From Mytilus californianus (taxonomy: Eukaryota): a DNA stretch of 64,000 nt. Below, piece by piece: positions 23,093-62,789 of the stretch. The stretch lies in the NCBI RefSeq assembly GCF_021869535.1, contig NW_026262684.1:1798001-1862000 (forward strand), in the 5' to 3' direction. The notes below the pieces were generated by a model, which saw only the letters and a program-made list of their open reading frames with translations, was not told the origin of the DNA and ran no database searches. The translations under genes were made by a program, and so were the position numbers. The stretch's first letter is position 1, and the number at the start of each line of letters is the position of its first letter.

Positions 23093-23662
23093 GATTTCAT
23101 AAGCTTCAAACGAAATAATATCCAGGGAGGCAGACAAACACTATGAGAGAAGAAGATAAATTCAGCATGGCCAATAGAAAAAGTTTGTCAAACATCAGTA
23201 CCGTTGGTTCGACAAACTGAGGAGGTTGATAATGACAAAATCTTAAAAGTTGTTAACTACAATACCGAACTCCAAGGTATATTTAGAAAGTAGGTGTCCA
23301 TAAAACTGATAAAGTCAAACGTTAGACTATATCAAACCAATGGAATGAATGGACAACAACTGTCATACTCTTAAGTTGTTACAGGCTTTTTTTCGCAAAG
23401 AAAGGTGGGTTAAACCTAGTTCTATATTAAGCTAAACCTCCCACTAGTATGACAGCTGTTTATAATTCCGTTATAGTGAAAAAATTGGAAGAGCAACCAA
23501 AACAGACATCATTGGTTAATGTGACAATAATTGGGATTGAACCTATTTAACCAGAAAAGCCCAAATATTTCAAATGACTTTATCTTGTACGACTCTACTG
23601 ATTATTTTTTAAGACATGACTTAAGAGTGAACAAAAATCCGTTATCAATGTTATGATATGCA

Positions 23663-23668
23663 TTTATT
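23663..23668 (-). terminator. Polyadenylation signal, Met-rich gene 1
   Basis: AATAAA on the - strand ~70 nt after the stop. Confidence 0.55.
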
Positions 23669-23737
23669 TGAAACTTATCTACAACTGTTTTAGATTTTAA
23701 TAATATGTAAATATTCATCAGTATAAAGAATCGTGTT

Positions 23738-25315
23738 TTAATATCCTCCTTTCATCATTGGCATTGGCATTGGCATTGGCATACCAGGCTTCATCATGTC
23801 CATCATTTTCATTGGCATGGACATAGGCATATCAGGCTTCATCATGTCCATCATTTTCATTGGCATGGGCATTGGCATATCAGGCTTCATCATGTCCATC
23901 ATTTTCATTGGCATGGACATAGGCATATCAGGCTTCATCATGTCCATCATTTTCATTGGCATGGGCATTGGCATTGGCATTGGCATGGGCATTGGCATTG
24001 GCATTGGCATTGACATTGGCATATCAGGCTTCATCATGTCCATCATTTTCATTGGCATTGGCATATCAGGCTTCATCATGTCCATCATTTTCATTGGCAT
24101 TGGCATATCAGGCTTCATCATGTCCATCATTTTCATTGGCATGGGCATGGGCATTGGCATATCTGGCTTCATCATGTCCATCATTTTCATTGGCATTGGC
24201 ATATCAGGCTTCATCATGTCCATCATTTTCATTGGCATTGGCATGGGCATTGGCATGGGCATTGGCATGGGCATTGGCATATCCGGCTTCATCATGTCCA
24301 TCATTTTCATTGGCATTGGCATATCAGGCTTCATCATGTCCATCATTTTCATTGGCATTGGCATATCAGGCTTCATCATGTCCATCATTTTCATTGGCAT
24401 GGTCATTGGCATTGGCATATCAGGTTTCATCATGTCCATCATTTTCATCTGCATTGGCATTGGCATATCAGGCTTCATCATGTCCATCATTTTCATTGGC
24501 ATTGGCATATCAGGCTTCATCATGTCCATCATTTTCATTGGCATTGGCATGGGCATTGGCATATCTGGCTTCATCATTTCCATCATTTTCATCATTGGCA
24601 TGGGCATGGGCATTGGCATATCAGGCTTCATCATGTCCATCATTTTCATTGGCATTGGCATGGGCATTGGCATATCTGACTTCATCATGTCCATCATTTT
24701 CATTGGCATGGGCATTGGCATTGGCATATCAGGCTTCATCATTTCCATCATTTTAGGCATTTTGTCCATTTGTGGCATCATTTCCATCATCATAGGCATC
24801 ATTTCCATTTTCATTGGCATCATATCCATTTTCGGCATCATTTCCATCTTTCCTTTCATCTCCATCATTTCTTTCATTTTCATCATGTCCATCATTTCTT
24901 TCATTTTCATCATTTCCATCATTTTGCCTTTCATATCCATTTTACCATTCATCTCCATCATTTTCATCGGCATCATCTCCATCATCATAGGCTTCATTGG
25001 CATCATTTCCATCATGCCACCTTTGCCGTCCATTCCGCCCATCATTTCCATCGGCATCTCAGGCTTCATTTGCTTCATGTCCATCATGCCACCTTTATCA
25101 CCCATTCCGCCCATCATTTCCATCATGCCACCTTTGCCGCCCATTCCGCCCATCATTTCCATCGGCATCTCAGGCTTCATTGGCATCATTTCCATCATGC
25201 CACCTTTGCCGCCCATTCCGCCCATCATTTCCATTGGCGGTGGCATCTTTTTCATCGCATAGGCATTTACGCTAGCCAATATGGCTGCAGTTATAAGTAC
25301 GATTAAAGTTGCCAT
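23738..25315 (-). CDS. Secreted methionine-rich repetitive protein 1 (525 aa), hinge-ligament Met-rich protein-like
   Basis: True start MATLIVLITAAILASVNA-YAMKK lies 20 nt after splice acceptor ttttcag|gattc (25335). GGMGGKGG block, MKMKEMMDMMKMKE core, many KMMDMMKPDMP(MP)n repeats, ends MMKGGY. Confidence 0.92.
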   Translation of the reverse strand: MATLIVLITAAILASVNAYAMKKMPPPMEMMGGMGGKGGMMEMMPMKPEMPMEMMGGMGGKGGMMEMMGGMGDKGGMMDMKQMKPEMPMEMMGGMDGKGGMMEMMPMKPMMMEMMPMKMMEMNGKMDMKGKMMEMMKMKEMMDMMKMKEMMEMKGKMEMMPKMDMMPMKMEMMPMMMEMMPQMDKMPKMMEMMKPDMPMPMPMPMKMMDMMKSDMPMPMPMPMKMMDMMKPDMPMPMPMPMMKMMEMMKPDMPMPMPMPMKMMDMMKPDMPMPMKMMDMMKPDMPMPMQMKMMDMMKPDMPMPMTMPMKMMDMMKPDMPMPMKMMDMMKPDMPMPMKMMDMMKPDMPMPMPMPMPMPMPMPMKMMDMMKPDMPMPMKMMDMMKPDMPMPMPMPMKMMDMMKPDMPMPMKMMDMMKPDMPMPMKMMDMMKPDMPMSMPMPMPMPMPMPMPMPMPMKMMDMMKPDMPMSMPMKMMDMMKPDMPMPMPMKMMDMMKPDMPMSMPMKMMDMMKPGMPMPMPMPMMKGGY

Positions 25316-27484
25316 GATTTGAGACACGACGAATCCTGAAAAACAAAAAGAATACGTCACTAGTAGAATAAATAAATAATCCAAACAGCTATTTTCGATT
25401 TACGTTTTAGGATATGAAATTTCCATACATTTTTTATCTCGAAAGTAGCCAAATGTTCTGTACATAAGTCTGATTAACAAACCTGAAAGGTGGCATGGAT
25501 AGATATTGCAATCTTTTTTTTTATAGCTTAATATATTTGATCTTAAAAGATTATATTGTATTTTCGATTGATAACCATGTGTCTGTTTGATACGGTTGGA
25601 GGTCTTTCAATGAGGATAAGACTGTCCGCCTAGCACTTTGACTAAACTGCTGAACATAAAATATTATTGTATTTTATTCTATCAAATTTAGAAAAGTAAA
25701 TTTTCCATTGAAACATTTACTGCTTCTAGTTAACTGTCTTTACATTTGCTGCAATTAACATGTTTCTTTTACGGGAAAACATGTTACAAGCAAACACAAG
25801 ATCGATACATTCTCATTGCAAAAATTATTTAATATATGCGAAAAAAAGAATAAAAAAAAAATGCTGAGGATCGACATTTTACCTACAAATGTGTCAATTA
25901 TATCTACAAATCATCTTCACCTCAACGCTACCAACTTACAGTATACGATCTCCTTTATTGCATATATATACTTAATGTCAAACATGTCCATATACATGTA
26001 CTTATATATGTATGGGAAAAAACATAAGACTGAAAATGCACTAAATATTTATATTCAATATGAATATTTACATAAAGTCGATCAAGACATTAAATTGTTT
26101 TAAAATTTTCTTCATCATTTCCTTCCGGTTTCACTATTTCACAAATATGCATGGATATAGTTGCTTGCGATATATATATATTTTTTAATTGATATTTGCT
26201 GACTTAACTCTTTTTTGACACGACTCGGTTGACGCTATAAATTGGAATTTATACAAAATATATTGTAACCATTGTAACTCTATATAAAATGAAATTTTAC
26301 CATAAACGCAATGGTATGTTCGTGCATATATGAAATTGACATTAGAATACCCAAGTTGGTAGTTGAAAAGGCCTGTCGATGAACGAAAAAGGCAAATTAT
26401 TAATAGATCAGAAGGTGGAATTTGTCAGTCAATGTAATTTGCAAACGGCAAAAGTAAATCTGTAAACGTTCTTGAACAGATATTATTGAAAAAGCAAATT
26501 TGCATTTAAAATTTTACGAATAAAGTGAAACATTATACATGATTAAGTGACTGCATTTCAGAGACTAGTTTAAAAAGCGATTATTGTAAAAACTGGAACA
26601 ACAGTTGAAGATTTGTTTAGGCTGACCAAACATCAATGGTTTAATAATAGAATGCCGAATAATGTTACGTTCATGTAGTGTATATATCTTTCCTATGTCG
26701 ATTTCAAAGTCGACATTTGTATCGGCAAATGTTAACTTTAGAAAATGTTTATACATTTTTATCTCGAATGTAGCCAAATGTTCTGTACATTAGTCTGGTT
26801 AACAAATACGGAAGGATGGCATGGACAGATATTTCACTGTCATTTTTTACAGCTGAATATTTTTTATCTTTAAAGATTATATAGTATTTTCGATTGATAA
26901 CCATGTGTCTGTTTGATACGATTGTAAGTTTTGAATGGAGATAATAATGTCTGTCGTATACTTTGAACATACTGCTGAACCGAAATATTAGCGTATGAAT
27001 TATATTTTATTAAATTAAGATATAACATAAAAAATAGTTTATTCTATCAAATTTAGAAAAATTTACTTTACCTTTAAAGATTTACTACTTTCAGCTGTTA
27101 AAAACTGTCCTTACATTTGCTGCAAATACTATGTTTCATTTACAGGAAAATATATGTGACATTGCTAAATGCTTTTAGAAAGTTCACACAACTATTGTGT
27201 TTATTGTATTTGAGATATTGGCATATTGGTTATTGTTTGACTACTGCTGGCAAACTTGATCTTGTAAAAAATAGCTTTTTAAGGTCCCTTATAGTTATGT
27301 AGCTCTTCATGTGATTAGGTCTTGTACATTCTTGGCTTTCTAATGTTTGTGTTTGATTGTTTCTTATGAAAGTAAATCAGCATGATGGAAAAAGCGCGTC
27401 AGACGCACCAAATTAATATAGTTTTTATTTTCATTTAATATTCTAATAATGATTTAATTTTAGTTTGAAGCAGTCACTTATTTA

Positions 27485-27691
27485 CTGTAAATTCAGAAAT
27501 TATTGCGTGAATTTATTATTGCGATTTTTGAAGAATGGACATAAATGCAAGATTAATTATTGCAATTTCAGGAAAAGCTGCATACAGATATATGCATCAG
27601 ATATCAGAATGCGAGTTCTTATTATTGCGATACTCACACAGTCGCATTATTCGCATTAATAAAAACCTCGCAATAATTTCTGAATTTACAG
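27485..27691. mobile_element. MITE with 23-bp perfect TIRs and a TA target-site duplication
   Basis: TA-ctgtaaattcagaaattattgcg ... cgcaataatttctgaatttacag-TA; the empty site cacttattTAtgtttatcc is seen in the paralogous intron near 49363. Confidence 0.9.
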
Positions 27692-28508
27692 TATGTTTAT
27701 CCGTCGTAAAACGTTTTCATGGTAAAAATCAATGTTATAAATTTTACACTTTCAAATGTTTCGGTTTTTTATAATGAAATAACAGTTGCATTAAATTGGT
27801 GCGTCCGAAACGCCCTTCTGGATGTATCGTCATTAGGAAAGATCAATCCTTTACGTTTGAAATCCAAGTATAAAATTGAGAATGGAAATGAGGAATGTGT
27901 CAAAGAAACAACAACCCGACCAAAGGGCAGATAAATAGATACCTGATGCCCCGCATGGGGGTGTCAAAGTAATCACATAATCATTAATCATTTTTTCAAA
28001 CAAGATATTCAAATAATCAAAAACACAGTCCTAGATTAACAAATAATAAAAAAATCATGAAATATTTGGTCTGGTAATCAAATAATCACTATAAAAACGG
28101 CTAAGTAATCACATAATCAAAAACACCCTGAGGATGCTCTGAAATCCCAGGATGAATAGATACTGGAATACGTGAGTATTTACAGGACCAAAAGGGACTA
28201 TGACGAATAAGTCCTTTGTACATGTTGTATGGAATACAATTGTATTAGGTCGTGAACTAAAGGTCTATGTATGTCTATGTATGTATGACCAAAAATTGTC
28301 TGAAAATTTCTTAGTATTGAGCGTTTGATTAAAGTTTGAAACAAAAATGGTGTTATTACTTTAGATTATTATTAAAACCGAACAAAAATCCATTTTATAT
28401 GAATATAAATCCCATATCTTTGTATTTTTCTCTTATCAGGACGATAGTCGCACCCATCCAATTTATGTGGTATACTGAAGGTTGATAATGAGAAATGTAA
28501 TTTCTTAC

Positions 28509-28570
28509 CTGAGTTTTCCCTAGGCGGCAAGTTTGTATCGATGGAAAGCCAAGGAAAGTTCTGCGATCGC
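28509..28570 (-). other. Non-coding exon 1 of Met-rich gene 1 (intron 25336-28508); transcription start approximate
   Basis: Donor CTCAG|GTAAG; the ~60-nt block is conserved in all four units and sits ~25 nt downstream of a TATA-like box. Confidence 0.75.
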
Positions 28571-28587
28571 TTCCATTAACATTCGCC

Positions 28588-28633
28588 TATTTATGCAACC
28601 TATAATTTTTGCTAATTAAGCTCATTACGTAAT
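28588..28633 (-). promoter_or_regulatory. Promoter of Met-rich gene 1: CATAAATA box plus ATTACGTAAT palindrome
   Basis: Same spacing in the four paralogous units. Confidence 0.65.
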
Positions 28634-28999: not shown

Positions 29000-29072
29000 G
29001 AGCAATTATTGTGGTGGTGCATGTAGTCGTTTATGTCATGGAGACAAATATGTCCCTCTTGAAAACTATGTG
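29000..29072 (+). pseudogene. Orphan copy of the NYCGGAC exon of Cys-rich gene 2 (frameshifted)
   Basis: gagcaattattgtggtggtgcatgtagtcg...tgtg|gtaag; 73 nt, so the wrong end phase; reads SNYCGGACSRL. Confidence 0.8.
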
Positions 29073-34088: not shown

Positions 34089-34913
34089 TTACATGTAGCA
34101 GGATGTGTTTGCCTTGTCAAGGCACATTGTCTCACTCCATTTGGAATTAATGTGTACATGGGTACTAAGTGTATCTTTGTATCAACTAAATCAGATTGTG
34201 GATTATAAATTTATTTTACAGTGATTAAGATTATAACATTATGTTGACTGCTGGACCCCATTTTTTGACATTTTTATCTACTATGTCTGTTTGCTTTGGT
34301 CGCACATTTTCTACATAAGGAAATGCCTGTACCAAGTCAGGATTACGACAGTTGTTTTCCATTCGTTTGATGTGTTTGAGCTTTTGATTTTGCCATTCGA
34401 TAAGGGACTTTCCGTTTTGAATTTTCTTTTGAGTTTTTTAACTTTTTGCAAACAAAAGGAATCATATGAAAGATGTACGGCCTTTGGATAGGTCAATCTA
34501 TATTTTTGCAAATTTTTCAAGTCAATCAAGAGAAGATGATACTGGGGGAATATAAAAACAACATAATTCGAAGAAATACAAACAACACGATGGCAAAACA
34601 GACAACCCATAGTATAGAAAATATTGCATGTGGAGGACACCAAAATTAACTTTCAATTTGTTAGTGACGAATATAAACCTCTCATTTGCAGAATATATTT
34701 CACAAATGTCTGTCGCTTGTCCCGAGCTACTGCCGGCATGTTCATAGACGGAAGTGACCTGTTAGGGGTAAATGGTTACGAAATGTTAAGCTCACTTAGC
34801 CATGTAATCTTATCTATTTTATTTCCATTTGTACGACTTTCCAAATTTGTCATTCGTTTACTAAGTAGTAACTGAAAACAGTAAACAACACTTTATTATG
34901 AATGATATATACA

Positions 34914-34919: not shown

Positions 34920-34989
34920 TCGCAACTTATCTACAACTGTTTTAATTTAATATAATATGTAAATATTCATCAGTTTGAAGAATCGTGTT

Positions 34990-35982
34990 TTAATATCCTC
35001 CTTTCTTCATTGGCATTGGCATTGGCATATCAGGCTTCATCATTTCCATCATTTTCATTTTCATTGGCATTGGCATATCAGGCTTCATCATTTCCATCAT
35101 TTTCATTTTCATTGGCATTGGCATATCAGGCTTCATCATTTCCATCATTTTCATTGGCATTGGCATATCAGGCTTCATCATTTCCATCATTTTCATTGGC
35201 ATGGGCATAGGCATATCAGGCTTCATCATTTCCATCATTTTCATTGGCATCATTTCCATCATTTTCATTGGCATCATTTCCATCATTTTCATTGGCATTG
35301 GCATATCAGGCTTCATCATTTCCATCATTTTCATTTTCATTGGCATTGGCATATCAGGCTTCATCATTTCCATCATTTTCATTTTCATTGGCATTGGCAT
35401 ATCAGGCTTCATCATTTCCATCATTTTCATAGGCATCATTTCCATCATTTTCATTGGCATCATTTCCATCATTTTAGGCATCATTTCCATTTTTGGCATC
35501 ATTTCCATCATTTTAGGCATCATATCCATTTTCATTGGCATCATATCCATTTTGGGCATCATTTCCATCATTTTAGGCATCATTTCCATCTTTCCTTTCA
35601 TCTCCATCATTTCTTTCATTTTCATCATGTCCATCATTTCTTTCATTTTCATCATTTCCATCATTTTATCTTTCATTTCCATCATTTCCATCATAGGCTT
35701 CATTGGCATCATTTCCATCATGCCACCTTTATTGCTCATTCCGCCCATCATTTCCATCGGCATCATAGGCTTCATTGGCATCATGTCCATCATGCCACCT
35801 TTATCGCCCATTCCACCCATCATTTCCATCATGCCATCTTTGCCGCCCATTCCGCCCATCATTTCCATCGGCATCATAGGCTTCATTGGCATCATTTCCA
35901 TTGGCGGTGGCATCTTTTTCATCCCATAGGCGTTAACGCCAGCCAATATGGCTACAGTTGTAAGCACCAAAAATGTTGCCAT
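34990..35982 (-). CDS. Secreted methionine-rich repetitive protein 2 (330 aa)
   Basis: MATFLVLTTVAILAGVNA-YGMKK after acceptor tttttag|gtttc (36002); KMMEMMKPDMPMP repeats; ends KKGGY. Confidence 0.92.
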   Translation of the reverse strand: MATFLVLTTVAILAGVNAYGMKKMPPPMEMMPMKPMMPMEMMGGMGGKDGMMEMMGGMGDKGGMMDMMPMKPMMPMEMMGGMSNKGGMMEMMPMKPMMEMMEMKDKMMEMMKMKEMMDMMKMKEMMEMKGKMEMMPKMMEMMPKMDMMPMKMDMMPKMMEMMPKMEMMPKMMEMMPMKMMEMMPMKMMEMMKPDMPMPMKMKMMEMMKPDMPMPMKMKMMEMMKPDMPMPMKMMEMMPMKMMEMMPMKMMEMMKPDMPMPMPMKMMEMMKPDMPMPMKMMEMMKPDMPMPMKMKMMEMMKPDMPMPMKMKMMEMMKPDMPMPMPMKKGGY

Positions 35983-37154
35983 GTTTTGAGATTCGACGAA
36001 ACCTAAAAAATAAGCAGTAATCGTTATAACTGGAATATAAAACATTTTTTTTTCTAAAGAGTTAGCTTAAAATTTCGGATAACATTTTAGACTCGATCTA
36101 AGTTTTATGATATGTAATGAAAAGGGGTGGTTTGTAAAAAATAAATAAAATGAACCTTGATTTGTAATTTGTACGGTTTTTCATTTATTCTTTGACATAA
36201 ATCCTCGTTAAAAGGTCCTTTTTTCAATGTTACTCTTGTTCTTTATCAAACCATATTGTACAACGTAAAAATAAGTATAAATTCCCTCAATGACGTAATG
36301 AGAACATAACATTTAACCAATCAAGTACTATTTAAGTTGCATAAAAATTACATGAATGCATAAAAGATATAATACACATGCACAAAATAAAACATTCTGA
36401 TTGCAAAAATATCTACATTAAGCAAAACAGAAACAAAAGAAAGTTTAATTGCAAATGTCTAGTCTGACCTCACGGAAATGGTTCCACAATGCATAATTAC
36501 AACCTTTCATAGAGTGCAGGATATCATCACATGTTGAAAATACCTTTTATGTTATAATATTCAAATAAGATATTTGTCTGGGCAAATATTAATTTGTGTA
36601 ATTGATATACAACTTTTAGCTCGAAAGATGCCAAGAGTTTTTTTTACATTAGTATGATTAACAACACGGGGGCGCGCATATAGATATTGCAAAGTTTTTT
36701 TTACAGTCGACTATATTTTATCTTAAAAAAAATATATAGTATATTTGATTGGTTACTAAGTGTCTATTTGATACAGTTGAAAGTCTTAAAATGAAGGTAT
36801 TAATGTTTGTCTTACACTTTAAACATACTGCTGAACTGAAATATTTGTGAATGAATTGTATTTCATTAAATGGACGTATAATATAAAAAATTTCTATCAA
36901 ATTAAGAAAAGTTCATTTTTCGTTAAAAAAAATGCCTGCTTTCGGTTAACAGTTTGAACAGTCGCTACAAACAACATGTTCTATCTACGGTACATATATA
37001 TGTGACCTTCCTAAAATCTTTTAGAGAACACACACAACTATTGTATTTTTGTATTGAGATATTGGCATATTTGTTATTGTGGGGTGTTTTTGTACAATTG
37101 GTCTGCATCAGGCAACGTCGATTTTTGAGGAATTTAGCTATTTTTATGTCCTTT

Positions 37155-38049: not shown

Positions 38050-38268
38050 AAATTGATGCGACTGTCATACAAGTGAGAGGTTTAGCGCTATAAAACCAGG
38101 TTCAATCCACCATTTTCTACATTTGAAAATGCCTGTACCAAGTCAGGAATATGACAGTTGTTGTCCATTCGTTTGATGTGTTTTATCATTTGATTTTGCC
38201 ATTTGATTAGGGACTTTCGGTTTTGAATTTTCCTCGGAATTCAGCATTTTTGTGATTTAACTTTTTAT
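38050..38268 (+). mobile_element. Dispersed repeat family Z inserted in the intron of Met-rich gene 2
   Basis: Well-preserved copy; empty site at 49697-49715 and 50400-50425. Confidence 0.85.
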
Positions 38269-38904: not shown

Positions 38905-38965
38905 CTGAGATAACTAGGTGGCAGGTTGGTATCGATGGAAAGCCAAGGAAAGTTCTGCGATCGTT
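38905..38965 (-). other. Non-coding exon 1 of Met-rich gene 2 (intron 36003-38904)
   Basis: Donor CTCAG|GTAAG, conserved leader sequence. Confidence 0.75.
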
Positions 38966-38981
38966 CCAACCATCATTCGCC

Positions 38982-39027
38982 TATTTATGCAATCTATTAT
39001 TTTTGCTCATTAAGCTTATTACGTAAT
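38982..39027 (-). promoter_or_regulatory. Promoter of Met-rich gene 2: CATAAATA plus ATTACGTAAT
   Basis: Positional conservation with the other units. Confidence 0.65.
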
Positions 39028-41835: not shown

Positions 41836-41839
41836 TAAT

Positions 41840-45418: not shown

Positions 45419-46629
45419 TGATATTCTCTATATAATCAATCAAATGTTTTAATAACCTATCTTAAGACTTGTATAGGTTGTTTTCAGTTTTAGATTTATT
45501 TTTTTTATGTATCTAATTAAATAATGAAGCAACAATTTCTGATGTGTCTTCACATAAAAACACATTGTATCTTTTATTCTCCTTGCATGTATATATTCAT
45601 AAATCGCAGATGATAAATTTACTTTGATAAAGTGTGGATTAATGCTGGTATTGAATATTAATTAAGTTAAGCAATAATTACCACCCATGAAGCAGAGAAA
45701 ATAAACATGTGGTATTTATTAACAAACAAATTATAGTTGGAGTGACAGATTTATTTGACAAAATTGTGTTTTCCTTAGTGGTGCAGATGATGAGTTTAGA
45801 TATATCCAACATCATTTTGCTACAAATACTTTGGGATAGGTGTAGAACAGTTACTTGCATGTACGTCATCTGGTCCCTAGTTAATAGTTGTCTCATTGGC
45901 ATGCACACCACAGTTTCTTATCTTATATATGAGGAGGATGTACACGTGCATACACTGTCAACGCACCTGGTGATATCGGGGGTTTGTAAAAACAAAGCAT
46001 CATTCGAAGAAAGGCAAATAACACGCGGCAACAAAGCAAACAACCCACTGTATAGAAAAAAGTGAATGTGGAGCACACCAGAATTAAAATCTCTAATTTG
46101 AAAGTGACGAATATAAACCTCTCATTTGCATTACATATCCACCTTACCACTTTCACAAATGCGTGTCTCTTCCAGAGCTACTACTTGAATCATCATAGAC
46201 TGAAGTGACCGCATATTAGTACTGTATACACATATGCATATTCACGGTACTACACTCTGTCGATACCTATATTTTGGCTTTGCACAAGGTCATGTTTTTC
46301 TCTGACTGTTAATGATTACTTACACTAAATTGGATGTTGGATTTGTACTGATTGATATTTTATTCTTAGATACATGATTTCTTTTATTAGTTGTTATTGG
46401 CTTTGAACTAGCTGTCAGTAACTGCGAGTAATATCAGATTTTACTTTCTATCTTTTTTGTTGTAAGGGATGTATAGATATCCTGCCACGTACGGTTTTGT
46501 TTTGCTAGATGCATTTCGGCTTTGTTTTGATCTGATGAGTTTTTGCTAGATGCTTTTCTGCTTTGTATTGATGTGATGAATAAAACCCTTTTCAACTGAT
46601 TGTTATAGTTTCTTCTTATGTTAGTTTTC

Positions 46630-46806
46630 TCAATTGAATTGTTTCATATTTTTGCATGTCGGGGCCTTTTATAGCCGTCTATACGGTATGGGTTTTCTCA
46701 TTGTTGAAGGCCGTACGGTTGCCAATAATTGCTTAAATCCACTTCCTTTGAACTTTGGTGGATAGTTGTTTTATAGGCAATCATACCACATCTCCTTATT
46801 TTTATA
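46630..46806 (+). mobile_element. Dispersed repeat family Y (3' part)
   Basis: ggggccttttatagc...caatcataccacatct. Confidence 0.7.
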
Positions 46807-46939
46807 TTTTAGTAATAGTTGTTTACGAAATATTAATCTCACTCAGAGAGAGAAGCTGAATTACTTTATTCCCATTTGTGCGACTTTGCCGAATTTGTTA
46901 TTCTTTTACAAAGTAGTTACTGATAACAGTAAACAACTC

Positions 46940-46945
46940 TTTATT
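46940..46945 (-). terminator. Polyadenylation signal, Met-rich gene 3
   Basis: AATAAA on the - strand. Confidence 0.5.
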
Positions 46946-47039
46946 ATGCATGATATATTCATTTATATGCAAATTATCTACAACTGTTTTAGAATTATAT
47001 AATATGTAAATATTCATCAGTATTAAAAAAAGCGTTTGT

Positions 47040-48359
47040 TTAATATCCTCCCTTTTTCATTGGCATGGGCATTGGCATTGGCATCATTTCCATCATTTTC
47101 ATTTTCATTGGCATAGGCATTGGCATTGGCATATCAGGTTTCATCATGTCCATCATTTTCATTGGCATTGGCATATCAGGCTTCATCATGTCCATCATTT
47201 TCATTGGCATTGGCATATCAGGCTTCATCATGTCCATCATTTTCATTGGCATGGGCATTGGCATTGGCATATCAGGTTTCATCATGTCCATCATTTTCAT
47301 TGGCATGGGCATTGGCATATCAGGCTTCATCATGTCCATCATTTTCATTGGCATGGGCATTGGCATTGGCATATCAGGTTTCATCATGTCCATCATTTTC
47401 ATTGGCATTGGCATATCAGGCTTCATCATGTCCATCATTTTCATTGGCATATCAGGCTTCATCATGTCCATCATTTTCATTGGCATATCAGGTTTCATCA
47501 TGTCCATCATTTTCATCGGCATTGGCATTGGCATTGGCATACCAGGTTTCATCATGTCCATCATTTTCATTGGCATTGGCATATCAGGCTTCATCATTTC
47601 CATCATTTTCATTGGCATCATTTCCATCATTTTAGGCATCATTTCCATTTTCATTGGCATCATATCCATTTTAGGCATCATTTCCATCTTTCCTTTCATC
47701 TCCATCATTTCTTTCATTTTCATCATGTCCATCATTTCTTTCATTTTCATCATTTCCATCATTTTACCTTTCATTTCCATCATTGGCATCATTTTCATCA
47801 TTTCCATTTTACCTTTCATTTCCATCATTTTCATCGGCATCATTTCCATCATCATAGGCTTCATTGGCATCATTTCCATCATGCTACCTTTATTGCTCAT
47901 TCCGCCCATCATTTCCATCGGCATCATAGGCTTCATTGGCATCATTTCCATCATACCACCTTTATTGCTCATTCCGCCCATCATTTCCATCGGCATCATA
48001 GGCTTCATTGGCATCATTTCCATCATGCCACCTTTATTGCTCATTCCGCCCATCATTTCCATCGGCATCTCAGGTTTCATTGGCATCATTTCCATCATAC
48101 CACCTTTATTGCTCATTCCGCCCATCATTTCCATCGGCATCATAGGCTTCATTGGCATCATTTCCATCATACCACCTTTATTGCTCATTCCGCCCATCAT
48201 TTCCATCGGCATCATAGGCTTCATTGGCATCATTTCCATCATGCCACCTTTGCCGCCCATTCCGCCCATCATTTCCATTGGCGGCGGCATCTTTTTCATG
48301 CCATAGGCGTTTACGCCAGCCAATATGGCTACAGTTGTAAGCACGAAAAATGTTGCCAT
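47040..48359 (-). CDS. Secreted methionine-rich repetitive protein 3 (439 aa)
   Basis: MATFFVLTTVAILAGVNA-YGMKK after acceptor ttttcag|gtttc (48379); about six 72-nt Gly-containing repeats, core, KMMDMMKPDMP repeats, ends KKGGY. Confidence 0.93.
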   Translation of the reverse strand: MATFFVLTTVAILAGVNAYGMKKMPPPMEMMGGMGGKGGMMEMMPMKPMMPMEMMGGMSNKGGMMEMMPMKPMMPMEMMGGMSNKGGMMEMMPMKPEMPMEMMGGMSNKGGMMEMMPMKPMMPMEMMGGMSNKGGMMEMMPMKPMMPMEMMGGMSNKGSMMEMMPMKPMMMEMMPMKMMEMKGKMEMMKMMPMMEMKGKMMEMMKMKEMMDMMKMKEMMEMKGKMEMMPKMDMMPMKMEMMPKMMEMMPMKMMEMMKPDMPMPMKMMDMMKPGMPMPMPMPMKMMDMMKPDMPMKMMDMMKPDMPMKMMDMMKPDMPMPMKMMDMMKPDMPMPMPMPMKMMDMMKPDMPMPMPMKMMDMMKPDMPMPMPMPMKMMDMMKPDMPMPMKMMDMMKPDMPMPMKMMDMMKPDMPMPMPMPMKMKMMEMMPMPMPMPMKKGGY

Positions 48360-48984
48360 ATTTTGAGATTCGACGAAACCTGAAAAAAAGACAGTTCTCG
48401 TTATAACAGGAATATATATATATATTATTCAAACATGCATTTTCCAAAATAATTTGCTTAAATTGGAGATAAAATTTCGGTCACGATCTGAATATAAGGA
48501 TATGTATATTAAATGAGTAGTTTGTAAAAAAAGTTACAATGAACCTGGATTTATGATTTTTTAACTGAACATACGTTTTTCCATTTATTCTTTGACATAC
48601 GTCCTCGTTAAAAAGTTTTTATTTCAATGTAACTTTTGTTCTTTATCAAGTGTAAAAATAAGTACAAATTCCCTCAATGACGCAGTGAAAACTTAACATT
48701 TAACCAATCGAGAACTATTCCAGTTGCATGAAAATTACCTGAACGCATAAAACCTATAATGTCAATACAAAATAATAATTCATTCTCATTGCAAGAATAT
48801 CAAACTTAAGCACAAAATAAAAGAATACTAATGATAGAAATGTTATTCTATCAGCTTTAGAGAATGTTAACCTTCCTTTGAAACATTTACTGCTTTTACT
48901 GAACTAGTTTTACATTTGCTGAGTTAATGGATCATGGAAATTTTATATTGGAGGAATTTAGCTATGTTTATGTCTCTTTGGTAT

Positions 48985-49186
48985 GATGGTGAGAGGTTTT
49001 GCTAGCTATAAAACCAATTCAAATCCACCTTTTTCTACATAAGAAAATACCTGTACCAAGTCAGGAATATGACAGTTGTTTTCTATTCGTTTGATCAGCT
49101 TGAGCTTTTCATTTTGCCATTTGTTAAGGGACTTTCCGTTTCGAATTTTCTTTGGAGTTCGGTATTTTTGTTATTTTACTTTTTTG
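48985..49186 (+). mobile_element. Dispersed repeat family Z inserted in the intron of Met-rich gene 3
   Basis: Well-preserved copy; empty site near 27285. Confidence 0.85.
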
Positions 49187-49552
49187 GTTATATAACTCTT
49201 TAGGTGTTTATGTCTTATACATCCTTTGCTTTTAAATGTTTGAATTTAGGCATTCCTTATGAAGGTAAATCAAGAAAAGCGCATCGGACGTACGAAATTA
49301 ATTAAGTGGTTTTTTTTTCTTTCAATATTCTAGTGAAGATTTCATATTATTTTGAAGCGGTCACTTATTTATGTTTATCCTTTGTTTTGGTTATCGTAAA
49401 ATGTTTTTCATGGTAAATAACCATGTTGTGAATTTTGCATTTTTTATCTCCTATCACATATAAATAATATATTTTCAATTAATCCAACACAACTTACATT
49501 TTAATGGTCATATGATAAAATCAATAAGAATGATAAAATACGAATTTAATAC

Positions 49553-50885
49553 GTATTGAATTGGTGCATCCGAAGAGCTTTTCTAGATTTACCATCACCA
49601 GTAACGATCAAACACAAAACGTTTGAAAGCAAAGGATGAATTGATACCTGAATACGTAAGATGTTATATGACCGAAAAGCTCCGTAAAAGAATAAGTCGT
49701 TTGTATGAAATATAATTGTAATAGATCGTGGACTAAACGTCTATACATGTATGTACAGATTATGTTGTTTGACAACATATAGAGTGTTATATTGTATGTA
49801 TTACGCGAAAAACATGCATGTTTCATAAAATAAATTGCCTAATTAACACACACAAAATAAAGATAGAATAAAACCGAGATAAGAATCCGATATTGAATTA
49901 AAGTGTGCCCAAAAACATTTCTGACGGATTTAAGTATTGAGTGTTTGATTTCATTATATGACAAACAAAATCATTTTGAATAAAAAATGAAAAAGGATAA
50001 ATATTTCAATTATATATGAATAAATGATAAGTTTTATTTAGAATTGTATTTCAATAATGGTTTGTTAACACCGCATTATCAACAGATCAAAGCAAACATA
50101 AACATGGTATTTTACTTTTATCAAAATGTGCCAACTTAATCATGTTAATACTCATTTGCTTCCTAGACAATATTTACACCTATCTGTTTAATGTGGTATA
50201 CAGTAGGCTGATAATACGATAAAGTCAGTAGGAATGATAAAATCAGAATTTGACAGTTATTAAATTGATGCATCTGACGCGCTCTTCTGGATTTACCTTC
50301 ATCAGGAACGATCTAGAACAAAAAGTTTGAAAGCAAAGGATAAAGTGGTGCCTGAGTACGTGAGATATTGTGTGACCAAAACAGAAGCCCCATAAAAGAA
50401 TAAGTCGTTTATAAATAATTTAATTGTAATAGATAGTGTACTAAACGTCTATAAATGTATGCATCGATTATGTTATTTGACAACATATAAACTGTTATAT
50501 TTTATGTATTACGCGAAACACATGCATGTTTCATAAAATCAATTGCATAAGTAATACACAAAATAAAGATAGAATAGAACCGAGTTGAGAATCCGATATT
50601 GAATAAAAGTTAGCCCAAAAATTTGTCTGAAGGGATTTAAGTATTGAGTGTTTGGTCTAATTACATGACTAACAATAATCATTTTGCAATTAAAAAAAAA
50701 GATAAAAAGATAAATATTCAATTATATACGAATAAATGATCAGTCTTATTCAAAATTATATTTCAATAATGGTTTGTCAACACCTCATTTTCAAAGAAAA
50801 ATATGCCAACTTTATCATATCAATACTTATTTCTAGACGATATTCACACCTATCTAATTAATGTTGTATACTGAAGGCTGACAAT
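49553..50885. repeat. ~700-bp tandem duplication inside the intron of Met-rich gene 3
   Basis: 49553-50212 and 50258-50885 align along their length (aaaagaataagtcgttt, aacatgcatgtttcataaaat, gagaatccgatattgaat). Confidence 0.9.
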
Positions 50886-50900
50886 AAATTAATTTCTTAC

Positions 50901-50962
50901 CCGAGTTTTAACTAGGTGGCAGGTTGGTATCGATGGAAAGCCAGGGAAAGTTCTGCGATCGG
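50901..50962 (-). other. Non-coding exon 1 of Met-rich gene 3 (intron 48380-50900)
   Basis: Donor CTCGG|GTAAG, conserved leader sequence. Confidence 0.75.
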
Positions 50963-50979
50963 TTCAACCATCATTTGCC

Positions 50980-51024
50980 TATTTATACAATCTGAAGTTT
51001 TGCTAATAAAGCTCATTACGTAAT
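50980..51024 (-). promoter_or_regulatory. Promoter of Met-rich gene 3: TATAAATA plus ATTACGTAAT
   Basis: Canonical TATA box at the homologous position. Confidence 0.7.
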
Positions 51025-51376
51025 AAAACATATGTTTAATTAAAAATATGCCACGACATTATATCTCATCAAAAATATGTAATAGTCAATACACGATAAC
51101 CATGTCCGACACCTGTTTGTCATAAAATACATAATCTTTTCCATACCAAAACATGAACACTTTAATTGACACAGATATTTTGTAAGAGTTCATATGATGA
51201 CATGCTTCTTAGTTGACTTTTTATCCCATTGACATATTTCCCACAGCCTCATTTATTCATACAAATGTAAACGTTTTGTAGAAGTGTTCTAACTAGTAAT
51301 TATCTACATTAAAAGCCTTTTGATCCACATCATATTTAATCTCTGTTATTAAGGATTTAACAATTTCTAATCCAAG

Positions 51377-51459
51377 GAAGAACTAATATGGTAGTGCATG
51401 TAGTTGTTTGTTTTATGGAGAAAGGGGTGGCTATTGAATGTACGTTACAAAAACATGTG
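51377..51459 (+). pseudogene. Orphan copy of the same exon (83 nt, two stops)
   Basis: ccaag|g aag aac TAA tat ggt agt gca tgt ... TGA atg tac gtt aca aaa aca tgt g|gtaag; same length and splice sites as the functional exon. Confidence 0.8.
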
Positions 51460-54840: not shown

Positions 54841-54859
54841 TGATACAATAGAAGAAAGA

Positions 54860-56172: not shown

Positions 56173-58428
56173 ATAAGCAGGATGTGAGTACCCTGTGTAC
56201 GCACATTGACTCACTTCATTTTGAAGTCAACACACTCAAACTGGTATTAAGTGTATCGTTTCTTGAATAAACTACATTATATAGTGGATTGTAACTTGCA
56301 AATATAGACAATCATACAGCATACATATTATATGTACTAATTAGAAAAGGTGATGTGCCAATCTAACTAAATTGCAAATAAATTGTAATGATGGAACGTG
56401 ATTGAAAGATGTCTGACCACGGGTCGAGTCATTCTATATTTTTTGTTAATTTCATAAGAGTTAATTAAGGAAAATGGTATCGAGGGAAGATATAAGCAGC
56501 ATAATTCGAAGAAAGCTAAACGACACGATGACAAAAAACCATACAGACAACTCCTAGTATACAAAATAGTGCACAGGTGACAATACGAACATCATTTTAA
56601 GCATGTGGAGGATACCAAAATTACACTCCCAATTTGTAAGTGATGAATAATTCTCTCATATGCAGAATATATCCACCTTGTAACTTGAGACATTCATTGT
56701 CGAAATGGGCATCTGGTGCAGAAAAATGTGTACCGTTATATGTGACTACTTCCACTGGGTCGATCCCTCTGATGGTGGACTGTTAGTCATTGAGGTTATC
56801 ACCAGCCCAATAGCCATTACTTTGCTACTGGCATGAAAATACGGATTTTGTTTTTTAGAATATGCTGTTACAATACTTTGGAAATTAATTTGAATTAAGG
56901 AATATATCTCCCTCATGCAACATTTTATGCAAAGCTCTGATTCCTTGCCCGAATTTTTTTTTTTTTTTTTTTTTATTTTGGTTCTTTTTGGTTTATAAGC
57001 TTTTCTTTGTTTTGATATGCTTTGAGTTTTCAAATATTTTGACCTCGAGCATCACTGAAGAGACATTTTTTGTCGAAATGTGCACCTGGTGCAGATATAT
57101 TGGTACCGTAAAATGTTATTTCATCAACCGGAATGAGCATAGACTTAAATTATCTTTAAGCGGTAGATGTTTTAATATTAAGCTCACTCAGCGAGAGAAG
57201 CTAATCTACTTCATTCCCATTTGTGTGACTTTCAATATTTCTCATTTTTTTACAATGTACATCTAGTAACTGATACAAGTAAATAACACTCTGTCATCAG
57301 TATTATCGCCAGCGGGTCATTTTTGCCATTAACGAAATTTATAAAAGTATAAATAATAATTGTACGACATTTTACAATGCAACAAGTTTATGAACAGTTT
57401 AGCACCACAACATGTGTCATAATTTGTTTTTACAGGTAATCCGCTTATCTGATGGGTCATTAATGATCATCAAAACTAATTCATACAAATAGAATCTGTC
57501 AGTCGCCATTAATCATTTCGAATTTAAGAAATTTTTCAGACGACTACACAATTTGCAGCGTTTACCGTAGTTTCATGATGAAAACGTTGTTGACGGAAAG
57601 ACAAAAACAGTCATGAATTTGAATTCTGTTAAAATTGTTAAATTTTGATGTATTCTGTCTTTGCCTGTTCTCACTTTTGGTGAGAAATAAAAAAAACGGT
57701 TGCCATTGATTGTATTCACTTCTACTGTAAACAATTCTCCGAAGAGGTAGGAACACACCCTAATCCAAGAAAGATACCTTTATTTATACCAGTTTTTCCT
57801 AGTATTGAAAGACCTACTTAAGATTTGTCTACACACTTCTGACTTAAGAACTTGTAGGTTTAAGGGGTCTTTTGATTTATGATGTAAAATTAAGAGGGTC
57901 TTAGCAGAGGGTTAGGGAAAGGGAAGTCGTCATTTTCTGTATTCTTTATTTTTTTATCCAAATTTTCTGTATTTGTATCTTTAAGCACACGTTATTTTCT
58001 CTTTTTCATTTTGTTGCCTATTTGTCTCTAATCGTTATTTTAGGTTCTAAACCATTTTCTCTATTCTGTAGCATATACAGACCATTAGCTGATTATGAAG
58101 ACTGAACGTACAAAAAATCATTATATTAGTCACACTAGTCCCTGTTTTGAGACATAACAATCAAAACCAGCACATGCAATCTTTTAAAGAAAAACAGCTG
58201 TTTTGTTTAATCTTTATTGTTATCTTTGTATTTGTATACTAATGAAATACAGAAAAAGAAAATGAAGGTACACATGTTTTTTTCATGTATTTAACCCTAT
58301 GCAAAAACTACCTCAGTCCTATCATGTGAAGCTGCTACCCAGGAAAAGTCTTTTTGTCTGATCTCGAAGTAGTGACTTAAGCCCTCAAGATTCTAGCTTA
58401 AATCCTGATGTTATGAATGAAATCTATA

Positions 58429-58434
58429 TTTATT
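58429..58434 (-). terminator. Polyadenylation signal, Met-rich gene 4
   Basis: AATAAA on the - strand at the homologous position. Confidence 0.55.
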
Positions 58435-58501
58435 TTAATATTATCTACATCTGCTTTAAAATTATATAATATGTAAATATTCATCAGTTCAAAAGGTTTG
58501 T

Positions 58502-59287
58502 CTAGTAACCTCCTTTTTTCATTGGCATTGGTTTCATCATTTCCATTGGCATTGGTTTCATCATTGGCATGGGCATTGGTTTCATCATTTCCATTGGCAT
58601 TGGCTTCATCATTTCCATTGGCATTGGTTTCATCATTTCCATGGGCATTGCTTTCATCATTTCCATTGGCATCATTTTAGGCATCATTTCCATTTTCATT
58701 GGCATCATTTCCATCATTTTCATTGGCATCATTTCCATTTTTGGCATCATTTCCATCATTTTCATAGGCATCATTTCCATCATTTTTGGCATCATTTCCA
58801 TCATTTTAGGCATCATTTCCATTTTCATTGGCATCATTTCCATCATTTTTGGCATTCCCATCATTTCTTTCATTTTCATCATTTCCATCATCTTTCCTTT
58901 CATTTCCATCTTTCCTTTCATCTCCATCATTTCTTTCATTTTCATCATGTCCATCATTTCTTTCATTTTCATCATTTCCATCATTTTACCCTTCATTTCC
59001 ATCATCGGCATCATTTTCATCATCTCCATTTTACCTTTCATTTCCATCATTGGCATCATCTTCATCATTTCCATCATCGGCATCATTTCCATTTTACCTT
59101 TCATTTCCATCATTGGCATCATCTTCATCATTTCCATCATCGGCATCATTTCCATCATTTTCATCGGCATCATTTCCATCATCATTGGCTTCATCGGCAT
59201 CATTTCCATCGGTGGTGGCATCATTTTCATCATACCGGCGTTTACGCTAGCCAATATGGCAGCAGTTGCAAGCAAGATAAAAGCCAT
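58502..59287 (-). CDS. Secreted methionine-rich repetitive protein 4 (261 aa), divergent paralog
   Basis: MAFILLATAAILASVNA-GMMK after acceptor tttttag|gtttc (59307); lacks the GG block and the KPD repeats, has MEMMKPMP repeats; ends KKGGY. Confidence 0.92.
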   Translation of the reverse strand: MAFILLATAAILASVNAGMMKMMPPPMEMMPMKPMMMEMMPMKMMEMMPMMEMMKMMPMMEMKGKMEMMPMMEMMKMMPMMEMKGKMEMMKMMPMMEMKGKMMEMMKMKEMMDMMKMKEMMEMKGKMEMKGKMMEMMKMKEMMGMPKMMEMMPMKMEMMPKMMEMMPKMMEMMPMKMMEMMPKMEMMPMKMMEMMPMKMEMMPKMMPMEMMKAMPMEMMKPMPMEMMKPMPMEMMKPMPMPMMKPMPMEMMKPMPMKKGGY

Positions 59288-60235
59288 GTTTTGAGATACG
59301 ACGAAACCTAAAAAAAACACAAAGCACACGTTATAAATCGAATATGTAAGTTAGTCAAGCATGCATAGTCTTTGATTAAAATTTATAATCAAATTTTAAT
59401 GCCGATGAATCCATAAATAAGAACTTGTAATGGAAAGGGTGGTCATGGTTTGTTTAAACAATATATACAATGGGTCTGGAAAATTTTTATCTTTTATCAA
59501 TATACGCTTTTCCATTTAACCTCAAACATAAACCAGCATTTAGACGTCCTTCCAATGTGACACTTTTCACAATCTTTTAATTAAAAATCCAAGTACCAAA
59601 TCTAGTTTTTGGTGTTAGATAACTTACTCAGTAGGAAAAACATTGGAGAGGTTGCACATTTTTATAAGGTCGTTTACATGAAACACAATTGTATTCGATC
59701 GAGAACTAAACGTATATGAATGTAAGTAGAAATTATGTAATTTAAAACATATGAGCTGTTATATTGTAAATAGTATGCGCATAACATGCATCTTTGACAT
59801 TAATAAATTGCATGATTATAACCAATTGACAAAGAGGGAACTCAGATCAGAAATATGCCCCATAAATTTTATAAAAGGTCATTTTACAATGTTTCAAGTT
59901 GTGAGTGTTTGATTTTATGACAAATAATGACAAATAATAATTGTTTTTTAGCACCTCATAATTCGAAATTACAAAATATTATTGAATAAAGATTCAATCA
60001 TATATTAATAGTTAATTACTCTTAAAAACTTATATTCAAGAAAAATGTACTCTGTATTTCATTTGTTTTATATTCATGACTATTCTTTTAGATATTTTAT
60101 ATAATTATTTTTTAGCATTTTACTTTAACTGAAACATGCTAACTATATGCGTATATATGCTTTTTAGCTGACTGTAACATCTATTCAATGTATGTGTTAT
60201 AGTGACAACTGTTAATAGTTTAATAATTTTCTTAC

Positions 60236-60297
60236 CTGAGTTTTAACTAGATGGCAGGTTGGTATCGATGGGAAGCCAAGGAAAGTTCTGCGATCGC
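60236..60297 (-). other. Non-coding exon 1 of Met-rich gene 4 (intron 59308-60235)
   Basis: Donor CTCAG|GTAAG, conserved leader sequence. Confidence 0.75.
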
Positions 60298-60313
60298 TTC
60301 AACCATCATTCGC

Positions 60314-60360
60314 CTATTTATCCAATTTGTTATTTTTGCTAATTAGGCTCATTGCGTAAC
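60314..60360 (-). promoter_or_regulatory. Promoter of Met-rich gene 4: GATAAATA plus variant element attgcgtaac
   Basis: Homologous to the other three promoters, with substitutions. Confidence 0.55.
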
Positions 60361-62789
60361 AAAACATATGTTTTATCAAAAATATGCATGGAAATTTATT
60401 TTCACCAAATTTATGTGATAGTCAATACACGATAGCTATGTCTGACACCTATTTGTCAAAAACTACATAATCTTTTCCACATCATAAAATTTACACTTCA
60501 ACTGACACAACTATTTTGTTAGAGTTCATAGGATAACGTGTTGACATTGTACTTTCCGGTTGTTCGACATTGTAAAATTCCTTTAACTTTCCGCTTCATA
60601 ATAATAATAAATTACCATCAAAGTTGTTATTAGACATAAACTAATTAAATTAATTGATGGTAAGGGCATGATTTATTAAGCTTTTTTTCTTTCCCGAAAG
60701 TTACAATGGCGAATGTTTTAATTTTCACAGATATATAAATAGTTAAGATTTACAGTTTGTTCTGATTTGAAAAAATAAACAACAGCACTTTCCGTGTACA
60801 CAGAAATTTTGAAATAAATCAGTCAGAATAACTAGAGATCAATTTCAGCTCTTAGATATTTAGCAATAAGAACTGCTAATTTATTTTATGCTGACAAATA
60901 TGAAACAAACACTGATTCTTTAATTTCCTTGTAATCTCTGTACTTAATACATGTTTAAGAATTAAATAAATCTGTCATTCTAGGATCGTTCAATTTAAAT
61001 TCCTTAAGAAAGTTTAACTGATTAGTATATACAGATATCGTTATTAGGTTTATATATTTATAAATTCAGTAAGAAAAGATAAATATTAAAACACTAGTGG
61101 GCTACATCAGGGTTGTTATATATTGCACCACTTATATGTTGCATTTACCCTTTTTATCTGAAACTTGAAATTATTAATCCCATTCTGATAAGAATGTGCA
61201 ATTAACCTTCAACGTTGTGATATTAACTCAAAATTTTATCAATAAGTCAATGAATGATTTGATCGTTGTAAATGCACTCAGAAATGTTTTAGCAGTGTGC
61301 AAAACCCATGCTATTAAACAAAAACGCAAAATACTTCTAACGATTTATTTAAGTAGTTTTCCTTGTCAAAAAAGTAATGAAAGTCACAAATAACATAATT
61401 TGTTGTTGGAAAGTTTTAATGTCCATAATTAAACGAACTTAATGTCAGGTTCTGGTGGAACACATTAACTATTGATACATTCCTTCTCACAATATTATAT
61501 GTTTATTTATTTCCATCTTTACAATTATTATCGTTTATATAATTATACAATGTTCATTTCCATTGCTTTATGGAACTTATGTAATTTTTATTTTAAAGCT
61601 TTGGTTAATTAAGTGTAAAGTTTCTGTTCTTTTTGACAAATTTTGCTGGATGAGTTTTATTAGCTAATTTAGTTTTATGCTTAAGTTGATTCCCGTTAGG
61701 GGATATTATTTGATCCTTTGGAGGCCTTTTGCTGGAAAATGTATGGTCTTATTGAGCCACAGCATTTTTTTCCTCGGTAAAAAGGTGGTAAAACGTATGC
61801 TTTATTGTTCTGCATTTAGTTTCCTTAAATAAAGTAGTTCTTAACTTCGAGAAAGCTCATAATTATCAGGTTAAAATTTATTAATCAATATATATATGCA
61901 TCTTTTTGTTTTCATTTATTTCTTTTTTTTTCAAGGTTAATAAAATTCTACAGTATTTTGGTGATCTCCAATCTATATTTTTGTGTATCACTCAGGTAGT
62001 TTTCCTTAAATAATCAGGTCCATTTTGAATAGTTTATAAAAGAATGCGTCAACAACTGATTTTTAGTCTAATGGGCCATCATTTTTTATGTTTATGTTTA
62101 GAAAGGAATATACTGAAAAAAATGCAAGTTTGGCGATATTGTCAGGGATTATTAATAGAATATTATGTGTTAAAAAGAGAGTTAATGAAGAACAAATTCT
62201 GTATTTTTCAACTTTAAATATTAACTTGTCCAGGGCAATTTGAGCAGCAGTTAATGACTAACCATGATAGTATTTCTTCAATATTTTATTATAATGTTCA
62301 AGATTTGGGGAAGTTACAATTTTTTGTATTTGTATGGATTTCCAAAATGGATGCATTGTAAAACAAAATCAACAGACACTAGACTTTTGTCAGCCTACGC
62401 TATGTTCGTCTATAAATTACTCGATGACACCCAAATCTAAAAAGTAAAAGGGCCGAATAAAGTACAAAGGAGAAAAGCATTGAGGACCCAAAATTCGGAA
62501 AAGTTTTGCCAAATACAGCTTAGGTAAATTACTTTTCCACTCGAGTGACGATATTTCTTTTTGGATAAGCACCAGAACTCAAAATTAGTAGCGGAACACC
62601 CTAGGTGCACATATGCTTTTTTAGGCGCTGTGTGTGGATATTTCTAGTATGGCTTCATTAAGTTCCTCTGAAGTAATCATATGTTATTTCAGGGTGGTAT
62701 TAAAAATCGCAATACACAAGTATAATCATTCCATTTACATAGTGTTTAAATATGTGAGAAAACTTCTGATAAGAAGCTTTGTATTATTT

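Follow-up and report, generated by a model that had tools for sequence, protein, structure and literature searches.

The hinge ligament is the bivalve structure classically reported to be rich in methionine (Met). To our knowledge, its proteins are known at the sequence level from very few species, through the abductin of scallop, reportedly described by Cao et al. in 1997, and through LMP, the ligament Met-rich protein of one pearl oyster, which is said to have been first reported by Suzuki et al. in 2019. Here we analysed a stretch of 64,000 nucleotides from the mussel Mytilus californianus (contig NW_026262684.1, positions 1,798,001 to 1,862,000 of the forward strand; hereafter the window), which carries a cluster of four minus-strand genes, A to D, for predicted secreted proteins of about 50% Met. 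We regard it as very probable that these are a real, expressed and old four-gene family, and we propose, with a probability of roughly 60%, that their products serve as elastomers in the matrix of the hinge ligament and correspond in the mussel to LMP of Pinctada and to the abductin of scallops.

LMP of Pinctada fucata is the top protein of the ligament matrix that is insoluble in sodium dodecyl sulfate and dithiothreitol (PMC7591529), and is described as a framework protein between aragonite nanofibres (PMC13080008). Its sequence, given in a supplement, begins with a signal peptide and a probable mature start, YGPRNRGKMMPMMPP, continues with a Pro-free segment of M, K and D and about 30 units of MMMKPD, and closes with a short Tyr-bearing end (PMC7591529); the first-pass annotation of the window, which had described LMP as built on MMMKPD repeats, was accurate on this point. 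Oxidation of Met has been detected on LMP peptides, and Kintsu et al. 2020 described Met-rich regions in insoluble nacre, prism and ligament proteins of Pinctada (PMC7591529). Abductin is a hinge elastomer made of Gly/Met decapeptide repeats, in which the Tyr residues at the extremities are speculated to be cross-link sites and Met-Lys sulfilimine links have been proposed (PMC9999432).

The four genes had been put forward from the letters of the window alone, and their open reading frames (ORFs) were all recovered (23738-25384, 34990-36045, 47040-48359 and 58502-59329). Measured between the signal-peptide ATGs (minus-strand positions 25315 in A, 35982 in B, 48359 in C and 59287 in D), the spacing was 10,667, 12,377 and 10,928 bp, as had been stated. 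Each protein begins with a leader of 18 hydrophobic residues that ends in VNA and, by inspection, fits the -3/-1 rule, and AlphaFold placed a leader helix over residues 2-19 of the gene C product and 2-22 of the gene D product. With these predicted signal peptides all four proteins would be secreted, as LMP-type ligament proteins are. The mature chains (30-60 kDa; Table 1) contain 48.1, 49.4, 48.2 and 53.3% Met in A, B, C and D, respectively. The six residues M, K, P, E, D and G account for 96.9-99.2% of each chain, with Pro at 13-20% and Gly at 3.7-7.6%, Cys is absent, and all four chains end in KGGY, so that the composition and terminus claimed at the outset both stood. As in LMP, the whole chain is dominated by Met, bears K, P and D, and is free of Cys. 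The motif MMKPD, which had been noted as frequent in three of the genes, was counted 17, 8 and 10 times in A, B and C and never in D. Composition-preserving shuffles gave expectations of 0.01-0.23 copies and a maximum of 3, so that MMKPD is a genuine repeat motif which composition does not explain. A six-frame scan of all 64 kb, in which base composition is AT-rich (about 32% G+C), found no Met-rich stretches besides the four. Plus-strand ORFs on the same DNA (e.g. 23796-25262) were discarded as artefacts that mirror the repeat, because the signal peptide, the splice acceptor, the TATA box, the polyadenylation signal and the GT-AG orientation all lie on the minus strand.

Alignment of the four proteins revealed a common plan consisting of the leader, an N-terminal stretch, 24-residue units, a Pro-free segment, a transition block, a C-terminal array and the terminal K-G-G-Y. 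The mature chain starts with Y-G/A-M-K-K-M-P-P-P in A-C and with G-M-M-K-M-M-P-P-P in D. The N-terminal arm is composed of 2-5 copies of the 24-residue unit MEMMGGMGGKGGMMEMMPMKPMMP, in place of which D has Gly-poor MEMM/PMM units. The Pro-free segment at the centre spans 36-51 residues of Met, Lys, Glu and Asp, of which 28-29 consecutive residues are identical in all four proteins, and a transition block of MEMMPK-type units separates it from the C-terminal array of 12-18-residue KMM[D/E]MMKPD(MP)n units (PMEMMKPM units in D). The Gly/Met arm at the N-terminus resembles abductin and the MMKPD(MP)n arm at the C-terminus resembles LMP. A, B and C each have two Tyr residues only, the first and the last of the mature chain, and D has the last only. 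Lys roughly equals Asp plus Glu (net charge +1 to +8), the charged fraction of 0.24-0.29 is well mixed, and MxM and MxxM patterns occur throughout the chains. Single-sequence AlphaFold models, of low overall confidence, contained helix in the mature chain only over the Pro-free centre, with a predicted local distance difference test score (pLDDT) of 70-79 in C and up to 86 in D, and showed the arms as low-confidence coil (pLDDT below 50-60). A classical amphipathic or single-alpha-helix reading of the core was not supported: an amphipathic moment at 100 degrees is lacking, and i/i+3,4 pairs able to form salt bridges show only weak enrichment (9 vs 5.5 expected, p=0.06). Predicted LysC peptides of the family include MMDMMK, PDMPMPMK, PDMPMPMPMPMK, GGMMEMMPMK and PMMPMEMMGGMSNK.

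Compared with described proteins, the mussel chains are most like LMP, with which they share a signal peptide, the absence of Cys, very high Met, construction from M, K, P and D, and an MMKPD-containing array. The likeness extends to a Pro-free M/K/D segment before the array, a probable YG start of the mature chain, Tyr only near the ends and, with about 300 residues in LMP, the same size class. By eye the order of blocks is colinear: leader, YG start with a K-M-M-P/M-P-P stretch, Pro-free segment, MMKPD array and short Tyr-bearing end. Unlike LMP, the mussel proteins add Glu and a Gly-containing N-terminal repeat block and form a four-gene cluster. With abductin they have in common that they are secreted and disordered and carry Met within Gly blocks (GGFGGMGGGX in abductin, GGMGGKGG here). 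Abductin, however, is a much shorter chain with two Cys, about 58% Gly, 1% Pro and far less Met; the 58-60% Gly and GGFGGMGGGX decapeptide by which it is recognised were not found in the four proteins, each of which has 0-2 copies of GGMGG. Three further insoluble Pinctada proteins, the second ligament protein pfu_aug1.0_1662.1_66071.t1, NU-5 and MRNP34, have Pro-poor stretches of Met, Lys and acidic residues like the central core, but in these the Met-rich part is one domain beside Asn/Gly-rich, acidic or Gln-rich regions, and there is no MMKPD array. Resilin and elastin, as functional analogues only, are likewise disordered repeat elastomers cross-linked at defined residues (by dityrosine in resilin), although their sequence and composition are unrelated and their cross-link residues are distributed along the chain and not confined to the ends.

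The first-pass annotation had suggested a non-coding first exon, and an ATG-free exon 1 of about 55 nt was identified in each of the four genes. All share a two-exon plan of a conserved TATA promoter, exon 1, one GT-AG intron of 0.9-3.2 kb and a single coding exon, the acceptor of which (polypyrimidine tract plus AG) lies 20 nt upstream of an ATG in good context (A at -3, G at +4). Aligning the copies revealed a block conserved in all four at 0.9-3.2 kb upstream of the acceptor. It includes an invariant TATA box, ATAAATAGGC, and, beginning about 25 nt downstream of it, a near-invariant 35-mer that occurs four times in the window against 0 expected. Similarity collapses beyond the exon 1 donor, which reads CAG/GTAAGAAA (slash, exon-intron boundary), or CGG/GTAAGAAA in gene C. 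Judged by these signals, this block is the core promoter together with the predicted non-coding exon 1, the transcription start being placed by inference. About 30 nt upstream of the TATA box lies a bZIP-like near-palindrome (TTACGTAAT in A-C, TTACGCAAT in D). It is part of a conserved promoter region of about 250 bp, over which every pair of copies shows 81-85% identity. At the other end of the genes an invariant 23-nt element, ACTGATGAATATTTACATATTAT, sits 15-20 nt after the stop codon, with AATAAA signals beyond it at 60-95 nt from the stop; the element is a candidate site of post-transcriptional control.

Transcription was assessed by comparing four sequencing runs (X1, X2, X17 and X21) with the gene C region (46500-51400). 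In X1, word depth was about 5,000 to 172,000 on exon 2 and zero in unique intron sequence, and signal was again present at the predicted exon 1. Spliced transcripts, named at the outset as the evidence to look for, were found: several X1 contigs join ~48379 to ~50901. In one contig the end of exon 1 is that of gene C itself, apart from 1 nt in an A-run, and a second contig shows this join too, with two substitutions. The 2521 nt left out by the join run CT...AC on the plus strand and GT...AG on the minus strand, which identifies the minus strand as the transcribed one. Depth on gene C in X2 was moderate. Expression of gene C was very high in some samples and near-absent in others, as expected of a tissue- or stage-restricted structural gene. 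The sole signal within the gene C intron came from dispersed repeats, which were equally abundant in all four runs (word depths in thousands). The repeat responsible is about 200 bp long and is scattered both within the genes and in the stretches that separate them (13145-13356, 34305-34435, 38061-38268, 48989-49195 and others).

The paralogues proved to be old. Introns and downstream flanks have diverged to 41-56% identity in most pairs, a level indicating saturation, with the exception of the 3' intron end of B and C (up to 73%). Identity is far better retained over the promoter and exon 1 block (81-85% in all six pairs), the 5' untranslated region (UTR) and signal peptide (81-96%) and the 3'UTR (68-86%), and the periods of the tandem repeats in the coding regions are all multiples of 3. 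The combination of saturated neutral sequence with conserved promoters, UTRs and reading frames implies that the duplications are old and that all four copies and their regulatory elements are under selection, so that the family expansion inferred earlier is borne out as an old and maintained family of four.

Within the Pro-free segment, a core of 88 nt encoding KMMEMMKMKEMMDMMKMKEMMEMKGKMEM has the same DNA sequence in each of the four genes. Its edges are sharp and every synonymous site is the same in all copies, across all 14 non-Met codons and including the family's minor codons GAG, GAC, AAG and GGA. The probability of this identity would be about 6e-8 for independent copies under the family's codon usage, and the copies are not independent. 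In contrast, signal-peptide codons do differ synonymously and neutral sequence is saturated. Either short-tract gene conversion or constraint at the nucleotide level would account for the core. It may mark a function at the RNA or DNA level, or a very local hotspot of conversion, in a structural-protein gene.

Searches for relatives were dominated by the unusual composition. None of the four exact sequences was present in a collection of 15 billion proteins. Word-indexed HMMER returned zero matches for B (E<=1e-3), for residues 1-45 of B (E<=10) and for C (E<=10); this search is likely blind to such composition, and the most likely cause is that composition correction suppresses Met-rich matches, so the result is no evidence of absence. 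An exhaustive phmmer search with C against representative proteins gave 14 matches. Thirteen of these were leucine-rich repeat or other repeat proteins that are not Met-rich and were discarded as periodicity artefacts, in spite of E-values down to 9e-22. E-values are therefore unreliable for periodic queries with 48% Met, which draw spurious matches while true full-length relatives are missed. The only real relative among the 14, P0012, is a gene call of 57 residues on a 1.1-kb metagenome contig, L001 (Joint Genome Institute metagenome 3300042711, contig Ga0454323_119142). It shares with the mussel genes the Y-tract-AG acceptor, a 5'UTR of about 20 nt, the ATGGCAAC start, an 18-residue leader, the Y-G start and the MEMMGG..KGGMMEMMP block, features which show that the family exists in at least one more divergent organism. 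Positions 1-485 of L001 contain two directly repeated copies of the family's 5' end, separated by an inverted Met-rich piece, and unrelated AT-rich sequence follows; this layout reflects either chimeric assembly or the rearrangement of a copy. DNA runs of two further organism labels contain 33-57% of the gene C words.

Other searches added no relative. Among metagenome contigs, 515 pattern matches were obtained, none of which was confirmed by tblastn, and a DNA pattern for KGGMMEMMP had no match; this collection evidently does not hold the contig of L001. The ESM Atlas gave no usable match, and in Pfam none scored above the gathering threshold, although Cornifin matched the Pro-rich repeats of B below it. 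A peptide like that of LICP (QPDHEGTYDY, up to 3 substitutions) was not found in six frames of the window. In public protein collections no annotated counterpart was found, a result limited by the composition-blind HMMER search. This suggests that the genes are generally unannotated, because annotated mussel orthologues with such an N-terminus should have surfaced as P0012 did. The expectation that the locus is easily missed was thus well founded: public protein collections yielded no annotated counterpart, and homology tools miss its relatives and return spurious matches at E = 9e-22.

The proposal that the four proteins are hinge-ligament elastomers draws on their composition, the motif shared with LMP, the order of blocks and the end-only Tyr, taken together with the classical Met-richness of the ligament. 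Several points weigh against it. The LMP hexapeptide MMMKPD has no copy in the four proteins, whose unit is instead 12-18 residues of KMM[DE]MMKPD(MP)n, and both the signal peptide and the C-terminus differ from those of LMP (HPTPYNLYQG in LMP, KGGY here). The putative homology with LMP draws on composition, shared MMKPD and block order by eye. Met-richness in itself is not specific to the ligament, since Met-rich regions also occur in Pinctada nacre and prism proteins. The transcript evidence comes from gene C only, and the X1 depth peak lies over the core shared by the paralogues and may sum several genes. X17 and X21, both RNA (about 6% of X21 was read), had almost no reads on gene C; X21, a set of raw RNA reads, and the DNA runs richest in gene C words come from one study. 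The source of the X1 expression could be the foot, the mantle edge or a larval stage. Finally, Tyr cross-linking and helix self-association are inferred only.

In the proposed model, cleavage after VNA would release a three-block chain of 30-60 kDa. Its central helix, with the invariant core, may be an association or junction module, and mixed charges, flexible Met side chains and frequent Pro would keep the arms hydrated and mobile, providing an entropic spring. A, B and C would be telechelic, and end-to-end Tyr cross-links of the dityrosine or 3,4-dihydroxyphenylalanine (DOPA)-quinone type could join them into an insoluble rubber, in which D, with a C-terminal Tyr only, could cap a chain. 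The paralogues differ mainly in relative block lengths and could in this way tune stiffness between ligament layers or growth stages. We offer tentatively, and as a rather doubtful extension, the full form of this model: a natural telechelic tri-block elastomer in which abductin-like and LMP-like disordered arms flank an invariant helical junction with a single Tyr at each end, four paralogues, one of them a one-ended capper, set the mesh size, and the 88-nt core is frozen at the nucleotide level.

Among other explanations, the one that survives best is that the proteins form the framework of another mantle-secreted matrix (nacre, myostracum, prismatic layers or periostracum), like the Met-rich regions of Pinctada NU-5, P,NU-5 and MRNP34. 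Met-rich regions occur in insoluble nacre, prism and ligament proteins alike (Kintsu et al. 2020), and a signal peptide, low complexity and very high, sample-specific expression would fit any shell matrix protein. However, in those shell-layer proteins the Met-rich regions are accompanied by acidic or Gln-rich domains, of which the four chains have none, about 50% Met over the whole chain together with KPD units has so far been reported only for LMP, and the literature searched contained no Met-rich mussel shell protein with these motifs. On this balance we consider the explanation unlikely.

A non-structural, chemical role is considerably less probable. The MxM and MxxM patterns that run through the chains are reminiscent of the 'Mets' motifs found in copper transporters and in periplasmic copper proteins, and Met oxidation is known on LMP peptides, so binding of soft metals of the Cu(I) type or a sacrificial antioxidant function, in mucus, byssus or extrapallial fluid, could be imagined. 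With a size of 30-60 kDa, long tandem arrays, Tyr at the termini and a shared block design, the chains nevertheless look like polymer building blocks and not like chelators, and no copper-binding or other Met-motif family emerged from Pfam, the word-indexed search or the exhaustive search of representative proteins. Least probable of all is a component of the byssus or another foot secretion: mussel foot glands yield extremely abundant, sample-specific transcripts of secreted, low-complexity Tyr/DOPA proteins, in line with the X1 data and the terminal Tyr, but known byssal proteins are rich in Gly, Tyr/DOPA, Lys, His or collagen, we know of no report of a Met-rich byssus, and the resemblance in motifs is to ligament proteins.

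Should the ligament assignment hold, extreme Met content and KPD units would be common to distant pteriomorph lineages, and such genes would be able to form multi-gene families with re-proportioned blocks. The end-only Tyr and central helix would then constitute a design rule testable in recombinant proteins, of interest for compressive bio-elastomers. In the literature searched we found no mussel ligament proteome and no paper that contains these motifs or describes a Met-rich ligament or shell protein of mussels; proteomics of shell or ligament based on databases that lack such genes would probably miss these proteins.

Table 1. Features of the four-gene cluster, in window coordinates
Feature	Position	Strand	Remarks
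Gene A promoter/exon 1	28509..28594	minus	TATA 28594-28585; exon 1 ~28564-28509 (predicted start); donor CAG/GTAAGAAA
Gene A intron	28508-25336	minus	exon 2 from 25335
Gene A coding sequence	23738..25315	minus	stop included; 525-residue precursor; 507-residue, 59.9-kDa mature chain; 48% Met; 17 MMKPD
Gene B TATA and exon 1	38905..38988	minus	last exon base 38905
Gene B intron	38904-36003	minus	exon 2 from 36002
Gene B coding sequence	34990..35982	minus	330-residue precursor; 312-residue, 37.6-kDa mature chain; 49% Met; 8 MMKPD
Gene C promoter/exon 1	50901..50986	minus	TATA 50986-50977; exon 1 ~50956-50901
Gene C intron	50900-48380	minus	2521 nt, GT-AG on minus strand; exon 2 from 48379; join in X1 contigs
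Gene C coding sequence	47040..48359	minus	439-residue precursor; 421-residue, 49.6-kDa mature chain; 48% Met; 10 MMKPD; transcript evidence
Gene D TATA and exon 1	60236..60321	minus	last exon base 60236
Gene D intron	60235-59308	minus	exon 2 from 59307
Gene D coding sequence	58502..59287	minus	261-residue precursor; 244-residue, 30.0-kDa mature chain; 53% Met; no MMKPD, GGMGG block or N-terminal Tyr
DNA-identical 88-nt core	24838-24925, 35580-35667, 47678-47765, 58900-58987	minus	encodes a Pro-free stretch; within the predicted helix of best confidence
Invariant 23-nt 3'UTR element	23700-23722, 34952-34974, 46999-47021, 58466-58488	minus	
bZIP-like TTACGYAAT motif	28620-28632, 39014-39026, 51011-51023, 60347-60359	minus	upstream of TATA

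Two further features lie toward the start of the window. Retroelement ORFs occupy 2557-6115 on the minus strand, one of 570 residues with a sub-threshold match to RVT_1 and one of 297 residues with a GIY-YIG-like motif seen by eye; the element is probably Penelope-like, and near it is a partial internal duplication (2226-2760 versus 4065-4347 and 5870-6128). On the plus strand, two pairs of mutually similar Cys-rich exons (C..NPC....C.G...A.C; 6911-7015, 8926-9063, 14011-14157 and 17091-17234), with no Pfam match, probably represent two tandem genes for small disulfide-rich proteins.

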